A stretch of DNA of 64,000 nt from Carpediemonas membranifera BICM (taxonomy: Eukaryota > Protista > Fornicata), in contig JAHDYR010000043.1 of the NCBI GenBank assembly GCA_019828565.1, positions 1-64,000 on the forward strand, given 5' to 3'. This document shows, in pieces, positions 32,808-47,900 of this stretch. A model generated the notes under the pieces. It was not told the DNA's origin. It searched no databases and worked only from the letters and a program-made list of their open reading frames with translations. A program made the translations under genes and the position numbers. How positions within the stretch are numbered: position 1 is the stretch's first letter; every line of letters starts with the position of its first letter.

Positions 32808-35800
32808 GGGGTTCTACACAGAACCGTGGGCGCCTGGGGTGTCGATGCCTCGGGCAGTTTATGTCAGTCGTGGCGCAGAAATTTGGATTTCGACACGCGA
32901 GCGCGATGTCAACGCAACCGCCTCCAGATGAGAGAATTATGTCTCTTGAGACTAGAATGGAGCAATTGAGCGAGGAAAACAAGGAAACTAACAACCTGTT
33001 ACGACTAGCACTCCAGCGAATGGAAGATTCGGACAAGGCTCAGAAGAAGCATCCTGTTTCCATCAGAACTAGGAACCTACCTTCCAGATTCGGCCTCAGA
33101 GATGAGGCGGAGTTCTTATACGACACTTTGGAGGATATCCAAGAAGGCCGCATCTTGCGGACATGGATCAACTGCAACTCTCGCTAGCGGCGCGCATCAG
33201 ATACCTCCGTCTCAAGGATGACAACTGGGACGAAGGCACTCCAACGAGGTTCCAGTCAAAGATCCGCACCCTCATCACCTCGGAGTCGGGCATCATCTCG
33301 CAGAATGCCATCGAAGAGGCGGCAGCCGCCGCCATGGCAAAGGGTAGACGCCGTTCTTTTCGTCCAGCCGACAAGGACAAGCGGGCGCGAGCCCATTAAC
33401 AATATCAACTACCAAGACTGTACATACTATACATACCATGAACGCGAGATGGAACACATGGCGCCGCTTCGGCGCAGCAGAGAGAGTAGTCACCTGGCTG
33501 AGGGAGGGAGTCCCCATAGAGCTCACAGCGCGGCCGCCACCACCGGCCCCACAACGGCGCTTAGAGCCGCGACTCCCCGAAAATCAGACAGATGGTCCGG
33601 CAGGGCGTCATCGCTCCGACCCCCATGAGACGCCTGTCACACAGCGCAACCTTGTTCTCGGTTCCCAAGGGGGACGACATACGGCCGTGTCACGACCTGC
33701 GTCAACTCAACAGAGTAACGAGAGAGCGCCGCTCATTCCGCCTCTTCGGCTTGAAGAGAGCGATCAACATCCTCTCCAAACAGTATTGGATGGTGAGCGT
33801 GGACCTTACGGCGGGGTACAACCAGGTCGAGGTGAGAGAGGAGGACAGACGCCTGCCGGACGGGTCAGCATTCCAGTACAATCGTCTGGGGTTTGGCTGG
33901 AGAGCAGCGCCATACTTTTTTCAGGCAATAACGTCGCAGCTGGCCAAGATCGTAGCGATGAGGTTCAAGATCAAGATCCTGGTCTACCTGGACGACTTCC
34001 TACTGGCCCATCACAACAGAGACGAACTGCTCCGCATGATACCGGAGATACAGAAGGTCTTCGCTGCCCTGGGAGCAACAGTCAACGAGAGGAAGACCGA
34101 TTGGATCCCACGACAGGTTCTCACCTATCTGGGCATCACCCTCAACACCACCGCAATGACTGTGAGACTCCCAAAGGACAAGGCCCAGAAATACGCAGCC
34201 TTCTTGAGCGATGCGACGCGCTCCTCCTCCAAGCCCAACGACGAGGAGACGTGGGCCAAGGTGCTCGGGCAACTCTCCTTCTTCGCGGCGACCGCTCATG
34301 GCTGGAGTCTCAAGCTACGCTACCTACAACAGGGGAGCCTGGACCAGCTCCGGCAGAACAACAGCCTAATCAAAGAGTGGCTGGAGGTCCTCCGAACCAG
34401 GCCCCGCAGATCGTTCGCGGAGATGCGGGCCCTCTGGGGAGCTTCACCCAGTATAGACCTGGCAATCGCGACAGACGCCTCGCAACGAGGGTGGGGAGCG
34501 GTGTGGTTCCAGGACGAGGAAGGCCACACGCGCGACAAGGGAACCTTCCCGGATCACCTTCAAGAGCTCACATCAACGTCAAGGAGCTTTACGCGGTGGT
34601 GGAGGGTGTTCGCCTTATCAACTCCTCCTCCAAGCAGCGAGAATTAAGGGTATACACCGACAACACGGCAACGCGGGCGTGGGTGAACAAGGCTGGCTCC
34701 ACGCGGGCACCCCGTCAGGCACTCGCCCTCCTCAACGAGCTGCAGGTGCTGGCAGACCACAAGAACCTAGTGGTCCACGCAGTCCATACCCCGGGCAAGG
34801 CCAACGTGATAGCAGACAGCCTATCGAGGCAGGAGATTCAGCCGGACGTAGCCTTCACTCCCCCGCACATCATAGAGCAGATCACCCTTTCATGGGGCCC
34901 TGTACAACACCTCTGGGAGGCCTCCGACATGGAACACCAGTGGGTCGGCCGGGTCCTTTTGGTCCCGACTACGTCTATACTTGGTCTCCTAACGCGCAAG
35001 CTGAATGCGACTCAGACAGCGACTCGGACTTCATCCCATCCGAGGGCGATGACTTCAGCGATATTCCTCCTCATACCGAACCTGCAGTCCCCGGAAGTAC
35101 GAGTGCTCCGGTCCTGGGCGAGCCACACACTCCCGTTCTCAGTGCCACTGAACCAGCTAGAACCAAGGAGGGAGGAGCTCTCCTGGATGGCACGACAGGA
35201 CACTGTCAGACTGCTGGCCCTCTGTCTCCCGACGACGCTCACGCATACCTCCTAGCCTCCAACCGCCTGGCCCACTTGCAACCATCAGGGGCCGCTACGG
35301 CAGCGGGGTGGGTAGCAAGGTTCCTTAGGGAGCGGGATGAGTCACAATCGCCAGCCTCCCAGTTACGTTCCTTCCTCCAGTCGGAGGCAGAACACTGTGG
35401 CCCAGAGAACGTCTCGAGAAAGGGGTTCTACATAGCGGAGCTCGCTCCGATGGTCTCTACGTGGGTACGCCCGGCAGAAATCATGCGAGTGGTCCGTGGA
35501 GTGGCCAAGACGGCCTCCACGGCGGGTCTGACCGGTGGCTCAAGGGCAATCTCCAAGCCAGAGATGCGCTACCTCATCAGTATCCGGCTCAGAGACGCCG
35601 CGTCGTTCCAGCTAGCACTGTTCGGCACACTGGCCTACCTCACAGTCTCTCGAGGCAGAGAGATCTTCGACCTAAGAGTCAAGGATGTCACCTTTCAGCC
35701 AGACAAGTCGGTCTTGCTGTTCTTCGCACACACAAAGACTGATAGGGCCGTTCGGAAAGCCGTAGCTTACGTAACCATCGATGGATTTAACCCGGCGCGG

Positions 35801-36288
35801 GCCTTGCATTCCTGGCAGTCCACCAATGATTTCAGCAAAGTGGAAACACTTCGATCATGGATGGACAAGGACCAACAGGCCTGGCCTATATGGATAGGGC
35901 AGTGCCCCATGGAGCTCAGAAGGAGCGGCCTTGGCCTCCTGTCTGGACATTCAAGGGTTGCCATCAGGGCATACCGCTGGGCGCGAGTGGGAGCTCCACG
36001 CCCATACCAAGGAATCAAAGTGTCTTCATGGAACGTATGTTTACAAGGAAAAGGAAAACAACCGTCGAGGGCCGGTGCTAGCACCGGCGGCTACATGGTT
36101 TTGTCAAGACCACAAGGAAGGAAGGGCAGCACAAAAGGGAAACAGGGGCCGTCGATAGAGGCTAAAAGGAGACTACGAACAAAGCAACAACCACTACACA
36201 GAAAGGCCCGGCTACTCAGAAAAGGGCGACGCATTTTTAGGACCGCGCCTTTTTGAAAGAATGGCCTATATAGTACGGAGCATGGACA

Positions 36289-39200
36289 ATGGGAGAAACT
36301 GGAAGGCCTGGACGGAGACCTCACCCGGATATGTACATGTGGCCCGACTTTCGGACCCAAAAATTCCGACCCAGTTTATGGACTAGAAAAAGGGGAGAAA
36401 TTTTGCACTCAACAATGCAGGTAGAAATACCGACAAGGATCAGGGATTCCACGCAGAAGCAGTGGGAGGACATCAGGGAACTACTGGACAGCTTCCTCGC
36501 TGAAAGGAACGATTCAAGGACTCTACTTCTTCGTAGAACAGGCAAGTTTACAGGAAAGTCGCTCAATGCGAACTCCAAAGGACGCAAGGAAGTAATCATG
36601 AACGCCAGACGCATCCTCTTCGCAACCGGCGTCACTGACAACAAGGACATCATTCTCAGAAACCCATGCGGCATCCACGGCCTCCGAGACCTTTTCTACA
36701 TGCTCACAGAGGCGCTCAACCCCAGAGACGAGGAAGCTAAGGACATGGCACAGGCACTGGAGCCCAAGACGCTGAAAGCGGGCTTCACTGGCATGGCAAG
36801 ATGGCCATCTGAGAAGGACATCGAGACGGCGATCCTCAAGCCGAAGGAAGATGGGCCCATCGAATGGAATGGAGACAGGGACAGCGTCAAGAAGGCCGAA
36901 GGGTCGTTCATACTGGTATCAGGGGCTCATGGAGACGAGGCCGTAGAAGGCGTGCCTTACGACAAGGTATGGGATCCGGCAAACCAAGGCCCGGTCACCA
37001 GAGTGGCCTACGAGCAAGAGGACGGCAAGTACAGGGTCATCCTAGAGCTAAGCGACACGTCAGCATGGTCCATCAGCCGCTTCATGGAGGAGGCCAGGGA
37101 CATCCTCAGGCTTCAGGCACCGGAGGCCCCGGCCATATGGCAGGCAGCATGGAACAAGTCAGGGATCTACCTGAAGGGCAGAACCAATATCCTGGGCGAA
37201 GGGGAGGAGACCCCCCTTAGCAACGAGCCGCCGTTCCGGAAGGTGAGGCTGGAAGTGCTCAAGGCCACCTCGGTCCGCAGCAATAGGGACGAACATGCCG
37301 ATCTGGACAGGTCGTCCGCTAGCACGGTCATCGACGGAGACGAGGAGCAACATGTCAAGGACAAGGAGGAACGACGCCAGCAGGCCACCATGCCCGGCAG
37401 GAGAAGCCTCGACGACAGCCTCCTGGAAGTGAACAAGAACATGGCCGGGGCCAACCAAGGCAAGATCGACCAGGACGAGGAGGTCGACTCAAACAAGGAC
37501 AGCAGCCAGCCGCCGAGGATGCCTAGAAAGGACAAGGAGAAACGACTGGTGATCGGAGCCATCGACTTCGAGTGCGCAGACCCTGGCGTCAAGAAGGCAG
37601 GGATCCCTGCCATCCCGGTTGAGGGCGGGATCGTACTCTTTGACCTCAGCACTGGGGACATTCTTGGACACGGGCATGGCCTGTATTACCAGGACATACC
37701 GGCAGCAAGCATGGACCAAGCGAGGTACACGGCATGGGCAGTGACGGGGCTGCCGCCGGCCACCTTCGTGGAGGTCGGGACGGGGCGGCCGCCGATCGAG
37801 TATGAGAAGCACATACATACTTTCAGGGACTGGGCCAACCGCCTGGCGGCTCAGCTGGCAAGGATCGAAAGGTCGGAGGGTTGGAAGATAATCATGTATG
37901 CAAAGGGGGTGGAGATGGAAAGCTTCCTCCTCACGAACCCCACAAATGGACTGGAGCAAGGAACCAGGGAATTCTTCCAAGCTAGGCTGGTGGACGAGAA
38001 GAAGCTACCAGAGATCCTGGAGAACAACGGCAAGGAGGAGGCTGGCCAAAACCTCAGGGACAACCTCGACAAGGCCAACTACCTGGAAGCAGTAACAACA
38101 TGGTCAAATGGATGGCAGAACAGGAGCGAGCCCAAGGGAGTCTGTCCGTACCACAGACACACCGCGGGTTGCTACCACTGTGGGTTGGCGGATACAGTAG
38201 TCTTCACAGCCAGGATCAGGGCCCTATGCAAGGAGAGGATGAGCACCCCAGACGTCTACCACTACATGGGTAAGGCACTCGACAAGACCATGGAAGCAGT
38301 CGGGAAGGCGGAGCCGGGCATGGATATCATGGGAGGCCCGGAATTCGCGACAAGGAGGGACACCTTTGAGATCTTCGGCACGTACCCGATCGGGGACGCA
38401 AGGGACGTCAGCAGGGAAGTCGGCGACAGGATCCTCGTAGTCCCGGACAACGGACACCGCTTCGGCATCGGCTTCGGGTTCGGGGAGGTTCTGTTGGGCA
38501 TGAAGGGCATCTTACTGGCCCCCCTCACAACCATGGACAACGAAGGTGTACTGGAGAGAAGCCCGCTATGGACCATCATGGAAAGAGCCACGGCTAACCA
38601 GCTCCGCATGGTACGCGTCAGGAAGGGCCTAGGGGCAGCAAGGGAGGAGGACATCATAACCATGGCCATGCTATACGATTGGTGGCCCTCGAAGGAGGCT
38701 ACGGCTCATCAAGGAGTCTGGGGCTGCGACGACCTAGCAGAGAGCCTCAGGGACTATGAGAAGGTCATAGTCAACGTCAAGGCCCCCAGGAACAGGGGTA
38801 GGATCACCCTAGGGGCGAGCTTCATCCCGAGAGACTGGGGCATGGTCAGGGTCAGCGAGGCTGGGACCATCCTAAGCCGTATGCGCAAGGAAGGGGCCAG
38901 ACTAGTCTCGGCAGCTATCCCGGACGAGCCCAGAGCCAACACAGTCAATGTCCCAGGCATCACGTATGTCCCCACCATCGACGGAAAGTCCGAACAGCCA
39001 TACCAAAGTAGGTTCTTCGACAACGGCCTGGAGGAAAAGGCGAGGCGGATTAGCACCAGGATGGTGGGCAGGCACTTCGGCCAGGACGCGGATCAAGGAC
39101 ATCACGACCAGCATGGAGACAGGGAAGAGGACAGAAGGGTAGGACACGGAGCCGGCGGTAGAGCTGGTGTCAGAGCTGACGACAGAACCGGCGACAGAGC

Positions 39201-39315
39201 TGGTAACATGAACAGGACCTCGGATCTTAACCACGGAGGAGACGACAGGGAGAGACAAGGACAACACGGGAACGCAGATGAGAGGCTCGTTCAGCGGGAA
39301 CACCTGGGCCGGTAG
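36289..39315 (+). CDS. LINE ORF1 (1008 aa) with a Maelstrom/DEDDh-like nuclease domain (~37546-38230); ORF 39278-39793 is probably its frameshifted C-terminus
   Basis: AIDFECA..IPVEGG..TGLPP..AKGVEME..CPYH..HCGLAD. Confidence 0.8.
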   Translation: MGETGRPGRRPHPDMYMWPDFRTQKFRPSLWTRKRGEILHSTMQVEIPTRIRDSTQKQWEDIRELLDSFLAERNDSRTLLLRRTGKFTGKSLNANSKGRKEVIMNARRILFATGVTDNKDIILRNPCGIHGLRDLFYMLTEALNPRDEEAKDMAQALEPKTLKAGFTGMARWPSEKDIETAILKPKEDGPIEWNGDRDSVKKAEGSFILVSGAHGDEAVEGVPYDKVWDPANQGPVTRVAYEQEDGKYRVILELSDTSAWSISRFMEEARDILRLQAPEAPAIWQAAWNKSGIYLKGRTNILGEGEETPLSNEPPFRKVRLEVLKATSVRSNRDEHADLDRSSASTVIDGDEEQHVKDKEERRQQATMPGRRSLDDSLLEVNKNMAGANQGKIDQDEEVDSNKDSSQPPRMPRKDKEKRLVIGAIDFECADPGVKKAGIPAIPVEGGIVLFDLSTGDILGHGHGLYYQDIPAASMDQARYTAWAVTGLPPATFVEVGTGRPPIEYEKHIHTFRDWANRLAAQLARIERSEGWKIIMYAKGVEMESFLLTNPTNGLEQGTREFFQARLVDEKKLPEILENNGKEEAGQNLRDNLDKANYLEAVTTWSNGWQNRSEPKGVCPYHRHTAGCYHCGLADTVVFTARIRALCKERMSTPDVYHYMGKALDKTMEAVGKAEPGMDIMGGPEFATRRDTFEIFGTYPIGDARDVSREVGDRILVVPDNGHRFGIGFGFGEVLLGMKGILLAPLTTMDNEGVLERSPLWTIMERATANQLRMVRVRKGLGAAREEDIITMAMLYDWWPSKEATAHQGVWGCDDLAESLRDYEKVIVNVKAPRNRGRITLGASFIPRDWGMVRVSEAGTILSRMRKEGARLVSAAIPDEPRANTVNVPGITYVPTIDGKSEQPYQSRFFDNGLEEKARRISTRMVGRHFGQDADQGHHDQHGDREEDRRVGHGAGGRAGVRADDRTGDRAGNMNRTSDLNHGGDDRERQGQHGNADERLVQREHLGR

Positions 39316-40125
39316 AGGCTCAGAGGGAGGCATGGACAACAGCAAGGATCACTCTTCCTCCACGACGCTCAAGCGCAAGGAGGGCAGCACGAGTAGGATC
39401 ATGGACTCGGACAGCGGAAAGAGAAGCAGGCACGAAGAGGACACGGACTGGGAGTCTGGAAGCAGACAGGCAACCGGCATGGACTCGGAGAAGCTGCGGC
39501 TCCGAAAGCAGTTGGCAGAGGCGCAACAAGAGATCTCAGCGCTCAAGGCTGCCCGACTCATGCAAGAGCAAGGCCACGGTAGGTTGGTGCTCTCCGGCGC
39601 CGCGACTAAGCCCAGCAAGGAGAAGCCCACGATCCCCCGGCACAAGCACAAGAAGGCTAAGAAGACCAAGGAGATCTCACCCATGGACCTGATGACCCAG
39701 TTCATCATGGTAATGCAGAGTCTACAAGGACAACAAGTGAGTCAGGCCGAGGACAGCTGCAGAGGCAGTGGGGAGTCCACGGAGGAGGAGTAAGGACATG
39801 GTAAAGCAGTATTCTTTCAAGGAACAAGCAACATTTTCTTTATAATTCACAAGCCCTGGCTCCCACCCAGGGCCCGGCATTAGCTGAAATGCACTGCCGG
39901 TAGGCTGTAGCGGCAGCCAAAGGGGGGGTCACGTCATATCGTCCCCCTCCTAAGTACCCTGCCCGAAGAATGGAAGGTCACCAGGAGGTAACAAGGTTGG
40001 CCTGACAAGGGTCACCGAGACCGGCATCTAGGCCCCTTGTTAGGACAAGGATAGCAGGAGAGGAGCGGGAAGCTGGGGCTCCCAAATTCTGGGAATTCGC
40101 AGGATAAGGAAACAGGACAAAGGCA

Positions 40126-43100
40126 ATGGTAACCTACAAGATACTTAGTCTGAACACAGAGGGACACATAGGAAGAGGAAAGGACTTCACGGCGTCTATG
40201 GCAACGGCGATTCAGCTAAGGTTGAAGGACATAGAGGCAGTACTCATACAAGAGACATGGAGAACGGCGAATACGAGGGTTCATTGCTTCATGGACCTTG
40301 ACTACGCACTAGCAGGGAGGGAGACGGAAGAGGACCTGGTCTTAGCCAACGAAAAACGAAAGGCGGATGTCAAAAGTCAGCACCGCATCAACCGACAACT
40401 AGGCATAGCAGGCAATGACGAACCTGCGCCAAGATGGAAGGGAACAAGGGAAGGCATCGGCACGATAGTGAGCCCACACGCAACTGCAAAGTGGGACATC
40501 GGCATATCGGACAGCCTATCGGGAAGAGTGCAAGCCAGCATAATGAGAACCGGCAGGGACATACTAGTCATCAACGTGTATGGCCCCCCATCCGGCCACA
40601 GCAAGCAGGAGAAGGATGGATTCAGGGACACTATACAGAAGATCATGGACATGAAAGGGAGCATGGAGGCCATAATTATGGGAGACTGGAACATCGACCC
40701 AGGCCATGGAAAGATCCACCCGGTGGAAGGATATGATGGAGAAGCACAGGCTCAAAGCCATCATACCCAAGTCTGGGACGCTCACATCAGGAACATCAAC
40801 CCCGGACTTTGCAGTGACAACACCAGGAATCCAGGGGGCGGAGATTGAGGTGGTAGAGTCTCAGAAGGTCGGGGTATGGGGCTCAGCACACAATGGAATC
40901 ACACTAGCATGGAAGGAACAACGGTACTATGGCAGAAGAGGGCGAGACGTGGCTCTGGCCATACCCGAGGTGCACACCTGGCCCATGAAAAAGAAGAAGG
41001 GGCCAGTCACAGTCTCAAAGCTGAACAGGATCAAGAGCTCGGACCAATGGGAAGAGACTATAAGAGCATGCATGGGCGACCCAGTGAACAACAGGGGAGC
41101 AAAGGCAAGGGACAAAGTGTTCGGGAACGGAGTGTGGAGCGAACTCCAGCGAACCCCATGGACAGAAATAGGCAACAGGACCAGGAAGGAAAGGATGAAA
41201 GAGGAGCTGGAGAAATACTGGGGAGAGCGCAGGGCCAAATGGGTGGCCGACCTCAGCAGAAGTGCAAAAGGGGGGTATAGGGCCTCAAGGGCCTCAGTGG
41301 AAGCTGCCATCAGAAGGTGGTGGTGTGATAACCAATACAAGGGAATGCCGGAGAGCCTCCTCAAGGACGGAGTGATAACCACGGACAAGGCGGCCATCAG
41401 CGAGATCCTCTTGCAACAGTATGCTAGAGTCAGCAGAGGCAGGGAACCCACCTGGAAGACATGGAGGGGCAGGGACGGAAATGAGTTCAAGGAAAGCGAG
41501 GTCAAAGCCGCAATCAAAAGGATCAGGAGGGACACCGCACCAGGGCCTGACCTCACATCTGGAGACATGCTGAGAGAGCTGGATGAGAAAGGCCTTAGGG
41601 AAGTGACGAGGCTCATCAACAGGGTCTACAGGGAGGGCGACGTACCCAAAGCATGGAAGTATGCCACAGTGTCGGCCATACACAAGACAGGGAAGCCAAG
41701 GGTCAAGCCGGAATCATATAGACCAATATCCTTGACACCACTGCTGTACAGGGTCTATGGTAGATTGCTCAAGATACGTCTGGAAGCAGCAACGAAAAGG
41801 TTCATACCAAGAGAACAGGCTGGTTTCCAGTCAGACAGGGACGTCATCCAGCAGATACAGTACATTGTGCAGCGGCACCAGGAGGGGGTGAGACCACGTC
41901 AATCTTTCTGGACATCGAGAAGGCATATGACACGGTACCAAGGGACATTCTCATGGATAAGCTACAGGGTATGGGGGTGGAGGAGCACTTGATCAGGGCA
42001 ATTCAAGGCACAATAAAGGAAACCTGGATATCAGTCAAGGGGGCAAAGGCATGGGAAAGAACCAACAGGGGAGTTAAGCAAGGGTGCGTCCTGGCACCGA
42101 CACTGTTTGTGCTGTTCATAGCTAACTGGCCCCACCTGGCCAGAAAGAAAATCAAGGGAGAACGGTACGACATCAGAGAACCGCCAAGGACCACGAGCCA
42201 CCTCAGCGACCGACTACCGGCAGCACTTACCATGTTTGTGGATGACACTGCGGTCACAGGGAGCAAACCGGAGCATAGCCAGATGGTCGCCAACATAATG
42301 GTAGACATAATCAGAGAGCATGAAATGAGGGTGAACGTCCAGAAGAATGTAATGATTAGCGTGGACAGAACAGCCCTAGTCAGGATCGAGGGGGTAACAC
42401 TACTGCCAGAGAAGGAGGCGAGATACCTGGGATTATGGATCGCAAGTGGGAAGGACCCTATGTCGGCCTGCATAAGGCGGAAACAGGAGCAGAGCGAAAG
42501 GTACAAGAGACTGGTGAGATGGGCAGGGTGGACCAGGGCAAACATGCCAGCACTAGCGAGCAGGCTACTACTGGAAATATATATATGGCCCAGGATCCTC
42601 TTCGGAGTCGAGGTGTGGGGGAACGCACCGGGAGGTAGAAGGATCTGGAATGACTGGCAGGGAATCATGGCAGGAACAGGACCGGGAGGGGGCGCAGCCA
42701 TGAGGCTGATGAATGGATGGGTGGACCTCCAGGCACACATGGAATGGCTGGCAGTCAAAAGGATAGTCAACTACAGGGACCAGGATATACCAGTCAGAAA
42801 CAGAGAATGGGGGCGAGGCACGGTTATGTGGGAAGCTAGGGAGAGAGTGCAGCATCTACTGGAGGGCACCAGAGAGGGAGCCCCCAAACCAGCGCTACTG
42901 GATTATGGCATGGAAACGATCAGGAGGGGGTGGATGAAGCGGTGCAAAAGCCGTACGGCACTAGGACTAATGGAAATCATGGGGACAAGGAAATTAAGCA
43001 AGTGTCTGCAAGGTAAGCCTACGGTAGACCGAAAGGCTGGGAAGGGGCAAAGCAGGGCGGAATGGAAGAGAATTGTATCCATTGCAGCCAATGTCAGCCC

Positions 43101-43566
43101 ATCCCCATCGTCGGCAGAGAGAGGGGAGGGCCCTATGAGAGCCATCACAGAGCTGGCCCAAGGCGCTGACCTAAAGAGAGAAATTAGCAGACTATGCCCC
43201 CTATGCTCGGAGGAGTCGGAGGTGAGCCTATTCTACAGGATCATTAGGGAAAAGCCAGGACCAGCAAGGAAGCAGGAAATGATCAGGGAGTGGGCAGAGG
43301 GCCAGAGGCTAGGATCGGCAGCGCACATAATCTGTGAATGCCCGGCAGTAGACAGGGGAGATGCTTGGACAAAGCTGTGGACAGCAGCGAAGCACAAAAC
43401 TAAGGACTTGGAAGTAAGGCAGGGCCCCCAGGGCGAATGGTACCAGGAAAGACCCATCCTAGAATTACAGCAACTAATAATATGGGGCTCGGAGGACATT
43501 TGGGAAGGCCTCACGGCAGGACTACGGGAACTGGCAAAGGTTTACAACAGCTTCAAGGTGGAATAG
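40126..43566 (+). CDS. LINE ORF2: AP endonuclease-RT-CCHC (frameshifts at ~40702 and ~41886)
   Basis: APE: SLNTEG, IQETW, INVYGP, GDWN, TPDF, SAH. RT: APGPD, YRPISL, QAGF, DIEKAYD, GVKQG, FVDD, YLG. Knuckle: CPLC...HIICEC. Confidence 0.93.
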
Positions 43567-44936
43567 AAGCATGTCATGAACCCCTGACTCCAGGACCGGG
43601 AAGGGATGGACAAGGAATCAGCCATGGACCACCCTCGCTGGGTGCTAAGCTCCTGGGATCAGTGAGGAAAGGCCCCACGTATCCCGGTAGCCAGGAACCA
43701 AAGCAAGGGAAGGAACGACTGCAAGGAAATAACAGGAAGGACAGACCAGAAATAAGAAAGAAAGGACATGCAACAAGGACAGAGCAAGGATAAGGTCAAG
43801 GAAATCCATATTCATATGGTTGCACCACTCGTTGGGACCCCAAGGAAACTGCAGGGACTGGCCACGGGGGTCGGAGGGGCAAGGTGCCCCTGCCGCCCTT
43901 GTTAACGACATGGGAAACCAGGGACATGTAGTGCAAGCGAAATGTTGTAAGGGGTAACAGGACAACCAGGCCCAGCGCCTGGGGGTACACCACCCATGCC
44001 CTGACCCACGCCACCTAACCAGGGTAGACAGCATGGACTTAGTCACTTTCCCCGCCTTCGGGTAGGCTTCCTAACAGAGTCGAGGGGGCATGGAATTGGG
44101 GAACCGGACAGACGAGAGGGTGCCGTGGCTGAACGGCTCTACAAGGACTGCAGGGAAGCAAGGAGTGTCATAGTCAAGGTCCTGCAGGACGATCCTGCCT
44201 GTCAATGCCCCGAGGACAGACCCCCAGGCTCCCCGGATAGTTGCCGGACTTTCAGGGAGACAGGAAAGCATATTTGCACGGAGATGGCCGCAGGGCCTCT
44301 GGGGCGATTGGAATCGGCTTTCCGCGGAGACAGTAGCACCGAAAGCCCAAGGCAAACGCTGCTGACCAGTTTGCCACGGGAAATAGGCAGTACCCCGGGG
44401 CACTCAGCTCCAAGACAACGGGAAACAAGCTCAGTCCGGGGTCAGAATCCAAGCACCATAAATTTCTTTCTTTCTTTCCCTTGCATTCCTGGATAGTCGG
44501 CCTCGGCCTCAAGCCCGAACATCGGCTGTGGCGCAGGGTGAAGAGCACGAGCTCCCTAAGCGTCAAGAGAGACGCTTCAATTGACTACTTAAGACAACAG
44601 ACACAGAACATATTCGGCCCGAAGACAGGGCTACACTCCTTCCGGAAGGGTGGGGCTTCCGAGCTGGCGTTGGGTGGAACGCCGCTCGAGGCGCTGCTTG
44701 CACTTGGTACCTGGAGGAGAGTGGAATCGATGAGAGCCTATATTGGCCCAGCCATCAGGACCAACACCGGATTCGCGGGGGAGTTGACGAAGAGCCTCCT
44801 CCGCCAGTAAACATCTTGCGTTCCAGCAAGAACCTCCGAGGCGGTAATGGATTCCGCTGGGGGTATGCCTGCCCGAGGTCAGACAGGACGTGACTGGGCA
44901 GAGAGCACCTATTACGGCAGTTGCGGTATAACCGTT

Positions 44937-47900
44937 GGGTAGTACCCCAGCTCATTGTCGCAAGGGCGACGGGACGTGGGCGAGGCCGGCAATCGCCGGA
45001 TGCCCGCGTCATTGGTCAAGATTGGTCGGCGCAGTTTATGCGGCCAGATGACGAACGATTCGCAGCCGGTGGCTGCGACGGCCGAGGAAGTGGCAGAACT
45101 GCGTACCACGGTGCAGGAGATGCAGAAAGCTCAGGAGAGATCCACCAAGATCCTCGAGAGGATGGCCGCCGCAAGCGCCGAATCTGAAGCGGATTTCCAC
45201 GAGGAACTGGCGTTTGAAGAAGATGAACAAGACCCCATCATGGCTTCCCTTTCATACATTGAGGCCATGACCGAGCTGCCGAAGAAGCGCCCTCTTCTGG
45301 AGGAGGCGAAGTTCCTTCGGAAGGTTCAAACGATCCTCACCTCTTCTACAGACACGAAACTCCTCAAGCGTCTTTCCCCCCTCCTCTCCGCCCGGCGTAG
45401 AGCTCTGATGATGAAGGATGAAGATTACAACGACGTCACAGTCACCTACTTTCAGAACCAGGTATGGAAGGCCATCGCGGACAAAGGAACCCTCGACGAG
45501 TCCCAGATCGAGTCCTTCGAGCTCAAGTCTAAGATTCACGGAGCCAAGCGAAAGGGCGACAAGTTTCAGCCTCCGGGAGGCGGGGGCCGAGGCGGCAGCT
45601 CTCGCGGTCGCAACCGGCAGTCAAACTAACCGAGAACCACCTCTTCCCATCGATAACTGGCGACGTGTGGCGACTCTGGGAGCGCTTCGGCGCCTCAGAG
45701 CACGTCGTCAGCCTACTCAGAGACGGCGTTCCAATATCACTGACCGCGCCTCCGTCGGCGGCCGCAGAAAGAAAGAAAGAAATTTATGGTGCTTGGATTC
45801 TGACCCCGGACTGAGCTTGTTTCCCGTTGTCTTGGAGCTGAGTGCCCCGGGGTACTGCCTATTTCCCGTGGCAAACTGGTCAGCAGCGTTTGCCTTGGGC
45901 TTTCGGTGCTACTGTCTCCGCGGAAAGCCGATTCCAATCGCCCCAGAGGCCCTGCGGCCATCTCCGTGCAAATATGCTTTCCTGTCTCCCTGAAAGTCCG
46001 GCAACTATCCGGGGAGCCTGGGGGTCTGTCCTCGGGGCATTGACAGGCAGGATCGTCCTGCAGAACCTTGACTATGACACTCCTTGCTTCCCTGCAGTCC
46101 TTGTAGAGCCGTTCAGCCACGGCACCCTCTCGTCTGTCCGGTTCCCCAATTCCATGCCCCCTCGACTCTGTTAAGAAGCCTACCCGAAGGCGGGGAAAGT
46201 GACTAAGTCCATGCTGTCTACCCCGGTTAGGTGGCGTGGGTCAGGGCATGGGTGGTGTACCCCCAGGCGCTGGGCCTGGTTGTCCTGTTACCCCTTACAA
46301 CATTTCGCTTGCACTACATGTCCTTGGTTTCCCATGTCGTTAACAAGGGCGGCAGGGGCACCTGTGCCCCTCCGACCCCCGTGGCCAGTCCCTGCAGTTT
46401 CCTTGGGGTCCCAACGAGTGGTGCAACCATATGAATATGGATTTCCTTGACCTTGTCCTTGCTCTGTCCTTGTCGCATGTCCTTTCTTCCATAATTCTGA
46501 TCTGTCCTTCCCTGTTCTTTCCTTGCAATCGTTCCTTCCCTTGCTTTGGTTCCTGGCTAACGGGATACGTGGGGCCTTTTCTCACTGATCCCCGGAGCTT
46601 TGCGCCCAGCGAGGGTGGTCCATGGCTGCTTCCTTGTCCATCCCTTCCCGGTCCTGGAGTCAGGGGTTCATGACATGCTTCTATTCCACCTTGAAGCTGT
46701 TGTAAACCTTTGCCAGTTCCCGTAGTCCTGCCGTGAGGCCTTCCCAAATGTCCTCCGAGCCCCATATTATTAGTTGCTGTAATTCTAGGATGGGTCTTTC
46801 CTGGTACCATTCGCCCTGGGGGCCCTGCCTTACTTCCAAGTCCTTAGTTTTGTGCTTCGCTGCTGTCCACAGCTTTGTCCAAGCTTCTCCCCTGTCTACT
46901 GCCGGGCATTCACAGATTATGTGCGCTGCCGATCCTAGCCTCTGGCCCTCTGCCCACTCCCTGATCATTTCCTGCTTCCTTGCTGGTCCTGGCTTTTTCC
47001 CTAATGATCCTGTAGAACAGGCTCACCTCCGACTCCTCCGAGCATAGGGGGCATAGTCTGCTAATTTCTCTCTTTAGGTCAGCGCCTTGGGCCAGCTCTG
47101 TGATGGCTCTCATAGGGCCCTCCCCTCTCTCTGCCGACGATGGGGATGGGCTGACATTGGCTGCAATGGATACAATTCTCTTCCATTCCGCCCTGCTTTG
47201 CCCCTTCCCAGCCTTTCGGTCTACCGTAGGCTTACCTTGCAGACACTTGCTTAATTTCCTTGTCCCCATGATTTCCATTAGTCCTAGTGCCGTACGGCTT
47301 TTGCACCGCTTCATCCACCCCCTCCTGATCGTTTCCATGCCATAATCCAGTAGCGCTGGTTTGGGGGCTCCCTCTCTGGTGCCCTCCAGTAGATGCTGCA
47401 CTCTCTCCCTAGCTTCCCACATAACCGTGCCTCGCCCCCATTCTCTGTTTCTGACTGGTATATCCTGGTCCCTGTAGTTGACTATCCTTTTGACTGCCAG
47501 CCATTCCATGTGTGCCTGGAGGTCCACCCATCCATTCATCAGCCTCATGGCTGCGCCCCCTCCCGGTCCTGTTCCTGCCATGATTCCCTGCCAGTCATTC
47601 CAGATCCTTCTACCTCCCGGTGCGTTCCCCCACACCTCGACTCCGAAGAGGATCCTGGGCCATATATATATTTCCAGTAGTAGCCTGCTCGCTAGTGCTG
47701 GCATGTTTGCCCTGGTCCACCCTGCCCATCTCACCAGTCTCTTGTACCTTTCGCTCTGCTCCTGTTTCCGCCTTATGCAGGCCGACATAGGGTCCTTCCC
47801 ACTTGCGATCCATAATCCCAGGTATCTCGCCTCTCGGCGGCCGCACCACAGACGCGACTGGACCCACGTGTTCGGGCCAAGCTCCAACAGCTGTTGAACG

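Follow-up and report, generated by a model that had tools for sequence, protein, structure and literature searches.

A predicted Maelstrom-type DEDDh exonuclease domain in ORF1 of a LINE of Carpediemonas membranifera

Maelstrom (MAEL) is known as a host transposon-silencing factor, and to our knowledge its domain has so far been followed back no further than unexplained 'protist MAEL nucleases'. A locus of the free-living metamonad Carpediemonas membranifera raises the question of whether a nuclease of this type can be part of a transposon itself and, if so, how long it has been there and what it does. The locus lies in a stretch of 64,000 nucleotides of strain BICM (GenBank assembly GCA_019828565.1, contig JAHDYR010000043.1, positions 1 to 64,000 of the forward strand; the window hereafter) and is the first open reading frame (ORF1) of a long interspersed nuclear element (LINE), for which a reading of the DNA without database searches (the sequence-only reading) had proposed a DEDDh nuclease domain that resembles Maelstrom and includes an E/C/H/C zinc site. 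The best explanation of the locus as a whole, to which a probability of roughly 0.8 is given, is that ORF1 encodes an old, vertically inherited and selectively maintained exonuclease domain of the protist MAEL type.

The ORF1 domain and its relatives

The features of ORF1 that bear on this question are listed below by window position; residues of the domain are numbered from window position 37501 (residue 1), which is amino acid 405 of ORF1.

36289-39315, + strand: ORF1 of the window copy, 1008 amino acids, from the list of open reading frames (intact copies have 1167 amino acids from the ATG)
37543-38229, + strand: predicted MAEL-type DEDDh exonuclease domain, from predicted beta1 to the last core helix, placed by fold, homology to Pfam MAEL proteins and conservation
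37564-37572, + strand: ExoI motif D-F-E, with D22 (37564-37566) and E24 (37570-37572), on predicted beta1 (strand 15-27); invariant
37621-37623, + strand: E41, putative zinc ligand on predicted beta2 (strand 38-48); invariant
37918-37920, + strand: E140, the ExoII acidic residue (Glu for Asp), at the start of the helix after beta4; invariant
37993-37995, + strand: D165, an invariant Asp at the end of predicted beta5, from alignments and model
38143-38193, + strand: C215-x2-H218-x7-H226-C227-x3-D231, comprising the putative zinc ligands C, H and C and the ExoIII motif H-x4-D; invariant
39278-39793, + strand: frameshifted continuation of ORF1, a helical, coiled-coil-like tail, from the list of open reading frames and a confident long helix in the model

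A single frame of the 1008-amino-acid ORF (translation of 37450-38330) holds all five motifs, AIDFECA, IPVEGG with E41, TGLPP with G83, AKGVEME with E140 and C215-P-Y-H218-x7-H226-C227-G-L-A-D231, each of them where the sequence-only reading had placed it.

Regarding the fold, an AlphaFold2 model of ORF1 residues 405-665, made with an alignment of six Carpediemonas subfamilies, has a predicted local distance difference test score (pLDDT) of 71.6 and a predicted template modelling score (pTM) of 0.74. Its elements follow the order beta1-beta2-beta3-alpha-beta4-alpha-beta5-alpha, the canonical DEDDh layout, with D22 and E24 on beta1, E41 on beta2, and H226 and D231 at the start of the last core helix. 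A Foldseek search of the PDB matched exclusively DEDDh exonucleases (Orn, ExoI, QIP, 3'hExo, TREX1, ERI2 and MAEL), the best query TM score being that of Drosophila MAEL (4ybg, 0.46). VIA-align, which was run independently of Foldseek on 48,161 chains, gave Z scores of 10.6 for 3'hExo, 10.4 for Bombyx Maelstrom in the SIWI complex (180 aligned residues), 10.2 for 4ybg (192 aligned residues) and 9.6 for 5af0, and of 8.3 and 7.9 for the arenavirus nucleoproteins (NP) of lymphocytic choriomeningitis virus (LCMV) and Lassa virus, which had the highest identity among the structural matches (17%). A second VIA-align run returned 270 chains at Z>=8, with top Z scores of 10-11 and MAEL chain 5af0_C at 10.6; the MAEL chains 5af0, 9nhc and 4ybg, at Z 10.2-10.6, gave the longest alignments (180-192 residues). 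Searches of BFVD and the ESM Atlas yielded DEDDh-type exonucleases only. As modelled, the fold of the ORF1 domain is that of a DnaQ-like, RNase H-like DEDDh exonuclease, and this point we regard as settled.

Regarding family membership, an exhaustive HMMER search with the six-subfamily profile against 1.84 billion representatives retrieved only 16 proteins, which are mostly from Carpediemonas, together with a set from assembly GCA_002919055.1 (PPCM01) and one protein, P0016, from a transcriptome of Rhizamoeba saxonica (E value 4.2e-4). P0016 scores 69.1 bits on Pfam Maelstrom (E value 5.7e-19, cut-off 22) and is a bona fide member of that family; hhalign aligned it with the six-subfamily profile at 98% probability and an E value of 1.6e-13, with 29% identity over 185 columns. 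For a second Pfam-positive protein, P0018 (PF13017, E value 5e-11), the hhalign match was weaker (56%, E value 1e-4), and searches with the domain and P0016 as queries yielded one further MAEL protein and otherwise only proteins from Carpediemonas. The motifs of the LINE domain pair with those of P0016 as AIDFECAD with GIDFEVAD, IPVEGGI with LPCEIGI, YAKGVEME with FAKGPTME, and CPYHRHTAGCYHCGLAD with CKYHKHMNPIYHCALAD.

The six Carpediemonas subfamilies, which share 32-51% identity, have invariant positions that include D22, F23 and E24, E41 and G42, H59, the PPATFV motif, A134, K135 and G136, E140, D165, C215-P216-Y217-H218, H226 and C227, and L229, A230 and D231. When four PPCM01 proteins, the divergent P0014, P0016 and P0018 are aligned with them (13 sequences, 19-51% identity), 13 columns are invariant, namely D22, E24, E41, G83, A134, E140, D165, C215, H218, H226, C227, L229 and D231, a set with hardly anything besides the catalytic pentad and the zinc tetrad. 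The pentad (D22, E24, E140, H226 and D231) is complete in the form D-E-E-h-D. Judged by its invariance in the six subfamilies and in the 13 sequences, two of which are Pfam-positive Maelstrom proteins, and by the hhalign E value of 1.6e-13, the motif set is far beyond chance.

The MAEL domain has been described as a DEDD-nuclease fold with a structural zinc, the ligands of which in Bombyx are E137 (on beta2), C290, H293 and C302, with R306 in place of the last catalytic Asp (PMC4408791). The LINE domain has the C-x2-H-x8-C spacing of Bombyx C290/H293/C302 and carries D231 at the position of R306, and an ECHC finger has been described only for MAEL and arenavirus NP (PMC7968707). By residue identity and spacing, the LINE domain has a putative ECHC zinc tetrad of the MAEL type.

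Fold, profile homology to Pfam-positive MAEL proteins and residue conservation together support the reading of the domain as MAEL-like and DEDDh, and we consider it very probable that it is a MAEL-family DEDDh domain and integral to the LINE. The proposal of the sequence-only reading is upheld to this extent by the predicted fold and its exclusively DEDDh matches, the P0016 profile match and the invariant residues. Its description of the domain as a catalytically complete RNase needs qualification: all five catalytic positions are invariant, but the ExoII residue is Glu and not Asp.

A stretch of about 34 residues (70-103, window 37708-37809) is modelled with pLDDT below 50 and yet carries the most conserved LINE-specific motif, G-[LC]-PPATFV-[DE]-[VI]-x-TG; G83 aligns with the Gly of an HGI motif in P0016 and P0018. 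This stretch may be a substrate- or partner-binding insertion.

As for the remainder of ORF1, a poorly conserved N-terminal region precedes the MAEL domain and a C-terminal region with the helical tail follows it. In the C-terminal part (L037:2685-4208, amino acids ~660-1167), the motifs G-x-ILV, RFG-x-G-x-G, KGILL, ANVKAP and FIPRDWG are kept between Carpediemonas and PPCM01, and ORF1 homologues of PPCM01 have coiled-coil-type Pfam matches. No Pfam family matched the C-terminal part, and an AlphaFold2 model of its 508 amino acids (pLDDT 39.7) contained one confident long helix and otherwise no assignable fold, the low score precluding an assignment. Feature searches of the ESM Atlas with the N- and C-terminal regions gave no usable match. 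Pfam searches with ORF1 and its three parts detected no exonuclease family, and no RNA recognition motif (RRM) or zinc knuckle outside the domain; the only matches, to Aegerolysin and SnAC, were weak and sub-threshold, and these candidates were rejected.

The element, its copies and the age of the domain

The boundaries and second reading frame of the element are as follows.

35802-35815, + strand: 5' target-site duplication, CCTTGCATTCCTGG, the identical 14-mer occurring again at 44479-44492
35816-44478, + strand: LINE element of ~8.66 kb with a (TTTC)n-like tail at its end, delimited by the repeat extent and the ends of the target-site duplication
40126-43566, + strand: ORF2, here in three frames, with an apurinic/apyrimidinic-type endonuclease (APE; ~40219-40758, Pfam Exo_endo_phos) and a reverse transcriptase (RT; ~41681-42441, Pfam RVT_1)
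44479-44492, + strand: 3' target-site duplication, a perfect 14-bp match to the 5' copy

A DNA search of the Carpediemonas genome showed that positions 35816-44478 form one repeat unit (full-length copies of 99% identity match positions 217-8879 of the query, window 35600-44600), with at least six full-length copies at 99% identity and many that are 5'-truncated or internally deleted. On the strength of the APE and RT in ORF2, the 14-bp target-site duplication, and the full-length and 5'-truncated copies at 99% identity, the element is a LINE, i.e., a non-LTR (long terminal repeat) retrotransposon, with a target-site duplication. The perfect duplications and near-identical copies noted in the sequence-only reading were thereby confirmed.

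The domain is not confined to this young family. While the 261-amino-acid domain is found without a stop and at 99-100% identity at 24 loci, more than 155 loci of the genome carry it in total, in subfamilies of ~100, 52, 47, 35 and 31% identity, and it lies in the same ORF of every full-length copy. Conservation over nine full ORF1 sequences is highest in the MAEL segment, with a mean top-residue frequency of 0.5-0.6 compared with 0.2-0.4 elsewhere. The search for the same ORF1 in other genomes suggested by the sequence-only reading was successful in PPCM01, in which nine contigs hold the full domain in ORF1 proteins of 1129-1250 amino acids, upstream of an APE-RT ORF2 where the contig is long enough; this ORF2 has 26% identity to that of Carpediemonas over 900 amino acids (E value 2e-88). 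A degenerate DNA pattern of the C-x-[YF]-H-x7-HC[AG]L[AG]D motif matched 37 loci in metagenome contigs, and the whole domain was present only in the nine PPCM01 contigs, the others being chance matches to a short motif; the same pattern had zero matches in viral contigs.

A second LINE clade of Carpediemonas has a single open frame of 1706-1748 codons in the order N-terminal region, MAEL, APE and RT (for instance L080:876-5993 on G000:C9 and L081:1369-6612 on G000:C6). It occupies dozens of loci, with 40-50% identity to P0014, its MAEL segment aligns with the 13-sequence alignment at 99.9% hhalign probability (E value 6.9e-32), and all catalytic and zinc residues are kept (VVDFEG, YPVEAG, AKDPRLEN and CPYH-x7-HCALSD). 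Across six lineages, pairwise identity in MAEL tracks that in ORF2 (r = 0.89, from 15 non-independent pairs). Upstream of P0019 (locus L077), the nearest outside relative of ORF2, no MAEL ORF was found.

Since the domain occurs in at least six diverged two-ORF subfamilies, in the single-ORF clade and in a second assembly, and since its divergence follows that of ORF2, its acquisition is old and not a recent capture: the common ancestor of a LINE clade that has since diversified already carried it. The suggestion that the young family of the window had captured it recently is therefore abandoned.

Set against the majority form of nine aligned copies, the window copy has ~55 substitutions and a small number of indels, none of which falls within the MAEL segment. 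An extra A at 39257 (+1 frameshift) truncates ORF1 to 1008 amino acids, compared with an open frame of 1172 codons in L037 and L038. ORF2 of the window is broken twice, by a 2-bp deletion after 40705 and at a G5 run at 41883, where L036, with an intact ORF2 of 1153 amino acids (RVT_1, E value 1.7e-32), has G6; G5 is found in five of the six full-length copies examined, in none of which both ORFs are open. The single-base indels scattered through the copies are either real or errors of repeat assembly.

One 5'-truncated copy with a different 3' flank (L083, G000:C44:67400-72300, reverse strand) has both ORF2 frameshifts of the window. As it shares the 40705 deletion and the G5 run at 41883, the frameshifted lineage seems to have been copied, which could reflect trans-mobilisation or a frameshift that is either tolerated or programmed. 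Derivatives with internal deletions that share their breakpoints (element positions ~5583 to 7530, or 5575 to 7896) are recurrent, having lost most of RT while keeping ORF1 (L037 and L039; G000:C1:773277-779990, C9:127959-134675, C27:64182-70507 and C54:248551-254894). In the L037 derivative the 1172 codons of ORF1 are fully open, and these derivatives look like amplified, ORF1-only non-autonomous elements.

Around the insertion, the LINE sits within an ORF of another retroelement, the RT gene of which lies upstream (33592-34644, RVT_1, E value 2.1e-21). The ORF downstream of that RT gene is split by the LINE and resumes past the target-site duplication (window 33592-35815 and 44493-44810); no Pfam family matched the interrupted ORF (34679-35815, 44481-44807) and no recombinase was confirmed in it. 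ORF translations of 44125-44496 (+ strand) are identical to those of 45737-46120 (- strand), as are those of 44071-44403 (- strand) to those of 45842-46174 (+ strand); part of the LINE 3' end is therefore present a second time, in inverted orientation, ~1.3 kb downstream (45737-46174 compared with 44071-44496).

Proposed function and competing explanations

In the explanation preferred here, a DnaQ-like DEDDh 3'-5' exonuclease fold would be stabilised by an E/C/H/C zinc site of the Maelstrom and arenavirus NP type, and the five residues of the pentad would provide metal binding and the general base. The domain would work as a Mg2+/Mn2+-dependent 3'-5' exoribonuclease, like EhMael, an Entamoeba MAEL protein with DEDD and ECHC residues which is an active Mg/Mn-dependent exoribonuclease (PMC4408791). 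As no member of the catalytic set varies among lineages with otherwise only 25-50% identity, exoribonuclease function appears the most likely, and by analogy with EhMael the domain is probably catalytically active. Within the LINE ribonucleoprotein the nuclease may act in cis, its substrate being either the template RNA, at the 3' end, or the RNA strand in the RNA:cDNA hybrid, and would supply a function which the ORF2 of this clade lacks. A role in the retrotransposition complex is suggested by the absence of a detectable RNase H in ORF2, by PF00075 in most of the nearest outside ORF2 relatives and by the fusion of MAEL to APE-RT in the sister clade, although cis RNA processing specifically is put forward only tentatively.

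A number of observations count against this explanation. The Pfam Maelstrom model PF13017 did not match the domain at E<=10; in this HMMER comparison, which the sequence-only reading had proposed as a check, the domain scored below the detection limit and was missed. The PF13017 model, dominated by metazoan sequences, also found nothing at E<=1 in the six-frame translated genome and likewise nothing in any control genome, and since the controls were equally blank the genome-wide search is uninformative on a host MAEL gene. The solved MAEL and arenavirus NP chains were unmatched by sequence or profile, the PDB giving chance matches only, with E values above 0.5. Structure alone cannot part MAEL from other DEDDh families, because the Z scores are tied, those to RNase T, Orn and ERI2 being ~10 as well. 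The zinc-site loop (219-225) and the 34-residue insertion are modelled at pLDDT below 50. The Glu at ExoII departs from the canonical Asp, as it does in both amoebozoan MAEL proteins, P0016 and P0018. RNase H went undetected in the ORF2 of either lineage in searches with Pfam only, and the cis role is drawn from domain architecture only. Among public sequencing runs, none on record as RNA holds the stretch, and two (Logan contigs) hold fragments that agree with the majority form of the family.

The main alternative is counter-defence: instead of processing template RNA, the nuclease might degrade element-derived double-stranded RNA (dsRNA) or small RNAs and so blunt host RNA interference (RNAi), in the way that immunostimulatory dsRNA is destroyed by the arenavirus NP exonuclease, which has the same fold, ECHC and DEDDh residues (PMC7968707), in keeping with the LCMV and Lassa Z scores and 17% identity above. 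An RNAi pathway is probably present in Carpediemonas, as there are genes for two Piwi-domain (Argonaute-family) proteins and for an RNA-dependent RNA polymerase-domain protein (G000:C7:87108-88037, C65:23790-24737 and C6:763156-764388), and the spread over more than 155 loci marks a highly successful family. The APE-RT fusion of the sister clade, however, fits a part in the retrotransposition complex at least as well, and counter-defence is considered unlikely.

The domain might also be a catalytically inert RNA-binding module, in the manner of metazoan Maelstrom, which binds single-stranded RNA (ssRNA) without exonuclease activity (PMC4408791); ssRNA binding would then serve the packaging or chaperone role of the ORF1 protein. 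Some domain of ORF1 must bind RNA, given that neither an RRM nor a zinc knuckle was detected in the rest of it, and the Glu at ExoII would suit a loss of activity. However, Glu is a metal ligand as well, and a DEED variant has been reported for DEDDy ORFs of retroelements (PMC5408684), while invariance of the five catalytic positions over 13 sequences of 19-51% identity is hard to explain without catalysis. As animal MAEL has lost exactly the residues that are invariant here, an inert role is the less likely one and seems improbable.

That the domain is a generic DEDDh exonuclease, similar to ERI1, Orn or RNase T, with a convergent Cys/His cluster and from outside the MAEL lineage, would account for the silence of the Pfam model and for Z scores to 3'hExo, RNase T, Orn, ERI2 and DinG-exo that equal or slightly exceed those to MAEL. 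It is nonetheless very unlikely, as the only non-LINE proteins retrieved from the 1.84 billion representatives are Pfam-positive MAEL, the hhalign alignment matches motif for motif, including HCALAD, and the ECHC finger, described for MAEL and arenavirus NP only, has the spacing of Bombyx MAEL. An artefact, i.e., a piece of a host gene or a chimera of annotation or assembly inside one LINE copy, for which the scattered 1-bp indels with their hint of imperfect repeat assembly could be cited, is effectively refuted by the presence of the domain in the same ORF of every full-length copy, inside an element bounded by target-site duplications, in diverged subfamilies and in a second assembly.

Comparison with known systems and implications

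Among the closest known systems is the protist MAEL exoribonuclease (Entamoeba histolytica EHI_192630 and PF13017 members such as P0016), which shares the DEDD fold, the ECHC tetrad and, one for one, the motifs IDFE, P-x-E-x-G, AKG-x3-E and C-x-[YF]-H-x7-HCALAD. The protist proteins are short and stand alone (270-350 amino acids), whereas the LINE domain sits in an ORF1 of 1167 amino acids or in a MAEL-APE-RT polyprotein and has in addition the insertion of ~34 residues with the conserved GLPPATFV motif. Metazoan Maelstrom (Bombyx 5af0/9nhc, Drosophila 4ybg) has the same fold, zinc-ligand positions and C-x2-H-x8-C spacing at an identity of only ~10%; it no longer has the DEDD residues, carries a fused HMG box and serves as an anti-transposon factor of the host PIWI-interacting RNA (piRNA) pathway, in contrast to the LINE domain, which is borne by a transposon and has a complete catalytic set.

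The arenavirus NP exonuclease (Lassa 3r3l, LCMV 4o6h) likewise belongs to a selfish, RNA-based replicator and is located on its RNA-binding protein. It shares the DEDDh and ECHC residues, including H-C-x3-D, and Lassa NP has been noted to combine both motif sets, DEDD and ECHC (PMC4408791), but it differs in the spacing from C-x2-H to H-C, in its viral nucleocapsid core and in its role in evading dsRNA sensing. The LINE domain has no NP core and no sequence match to NP chains or match in viral contigs, and is not assigned to the arenavirus NP group.

Among retroelements, the nearest precedent is an RNase D-like DEDDy ORF3 reported from the Juno and Vesta LTR retrotransposons and the Athena Penelope-like elements of bdelloid rotifers, with the catalytic motif altered to DEED and a Cys-His-Cys motif in some copies; that study stated DEDDy exonucleases to be previously unreported in retrotransposons and mentioned Maelstrom by analogy only (PMC5408684). 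These are also DnaQ-superfamily exonucleases on retroelements, but they form a separate 3' ORF of animal LTR or Penelope-like elements, while the LINE case concerns the DEDDh/MAEL branch inside ORF1, in the gag-like position, of a metamonad non-LTR element. Within LINEs, the SGNH esterase in ORF1 of CR1, L2 and RTEX is a precedent for an enzyme in ORF1, though of a different class, and the RNase H domain in ORF2 of I, Tad and Ingi-type elements is a precedent for an accessory nuclease of RNase H fold, though it is endonucleolytic and positioned after RT, unlike the MAEL of ORF1. Full-text literature searches turned up no LINE ORF1, and no transposon of another kind, for which a MAEL or DEDDh domain had been reported; this agrees with the view of the sequence-only reading that the domain lies outside the known LINE ORF1 types; transposons are not discussed in the genome paper of C. 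membranifera.

We rate the novelty as one of combination, in which a known domain family is joined to a known element class, with evolutionary implications. If the preferred explanation is correct, a catalytically complete MAEL belongs to the ORF1 of a transposon itself as a conserved and ancestral component, and in a sister clade it is fused to endonuclease and RT, and a new enzymatic class joins the short list of LINE ORF1 domains. It is conceivable, if quite improbable at present, that the MAEL/ECHC exonuclease is primarily a module of retroelements and viruses and that an ancient LINE ORF1 nuclease gave rise to the cellular Maelstrom of the piRNA pathway and perhaps to the exonuclease of arenavirus NP as well. 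Were this true, the anti-transposon factor Maelstrom would be a domesticated transposon protein, and the multi-copy 'lineage-specific expansions' of MAEL reported from Entamoeba and other protists could partly be transposon copies. The direction of transfer among host MAEL, retroelements and arenavirus NP is a testable phylogenetic question, and the LINEs of Carpediemonas would offer a tractable system for a 3'-5' exoribonuclease in target-primed reverse transcription, be it in template-end processing, in substitution for RNase H or in evasion of RNAi.

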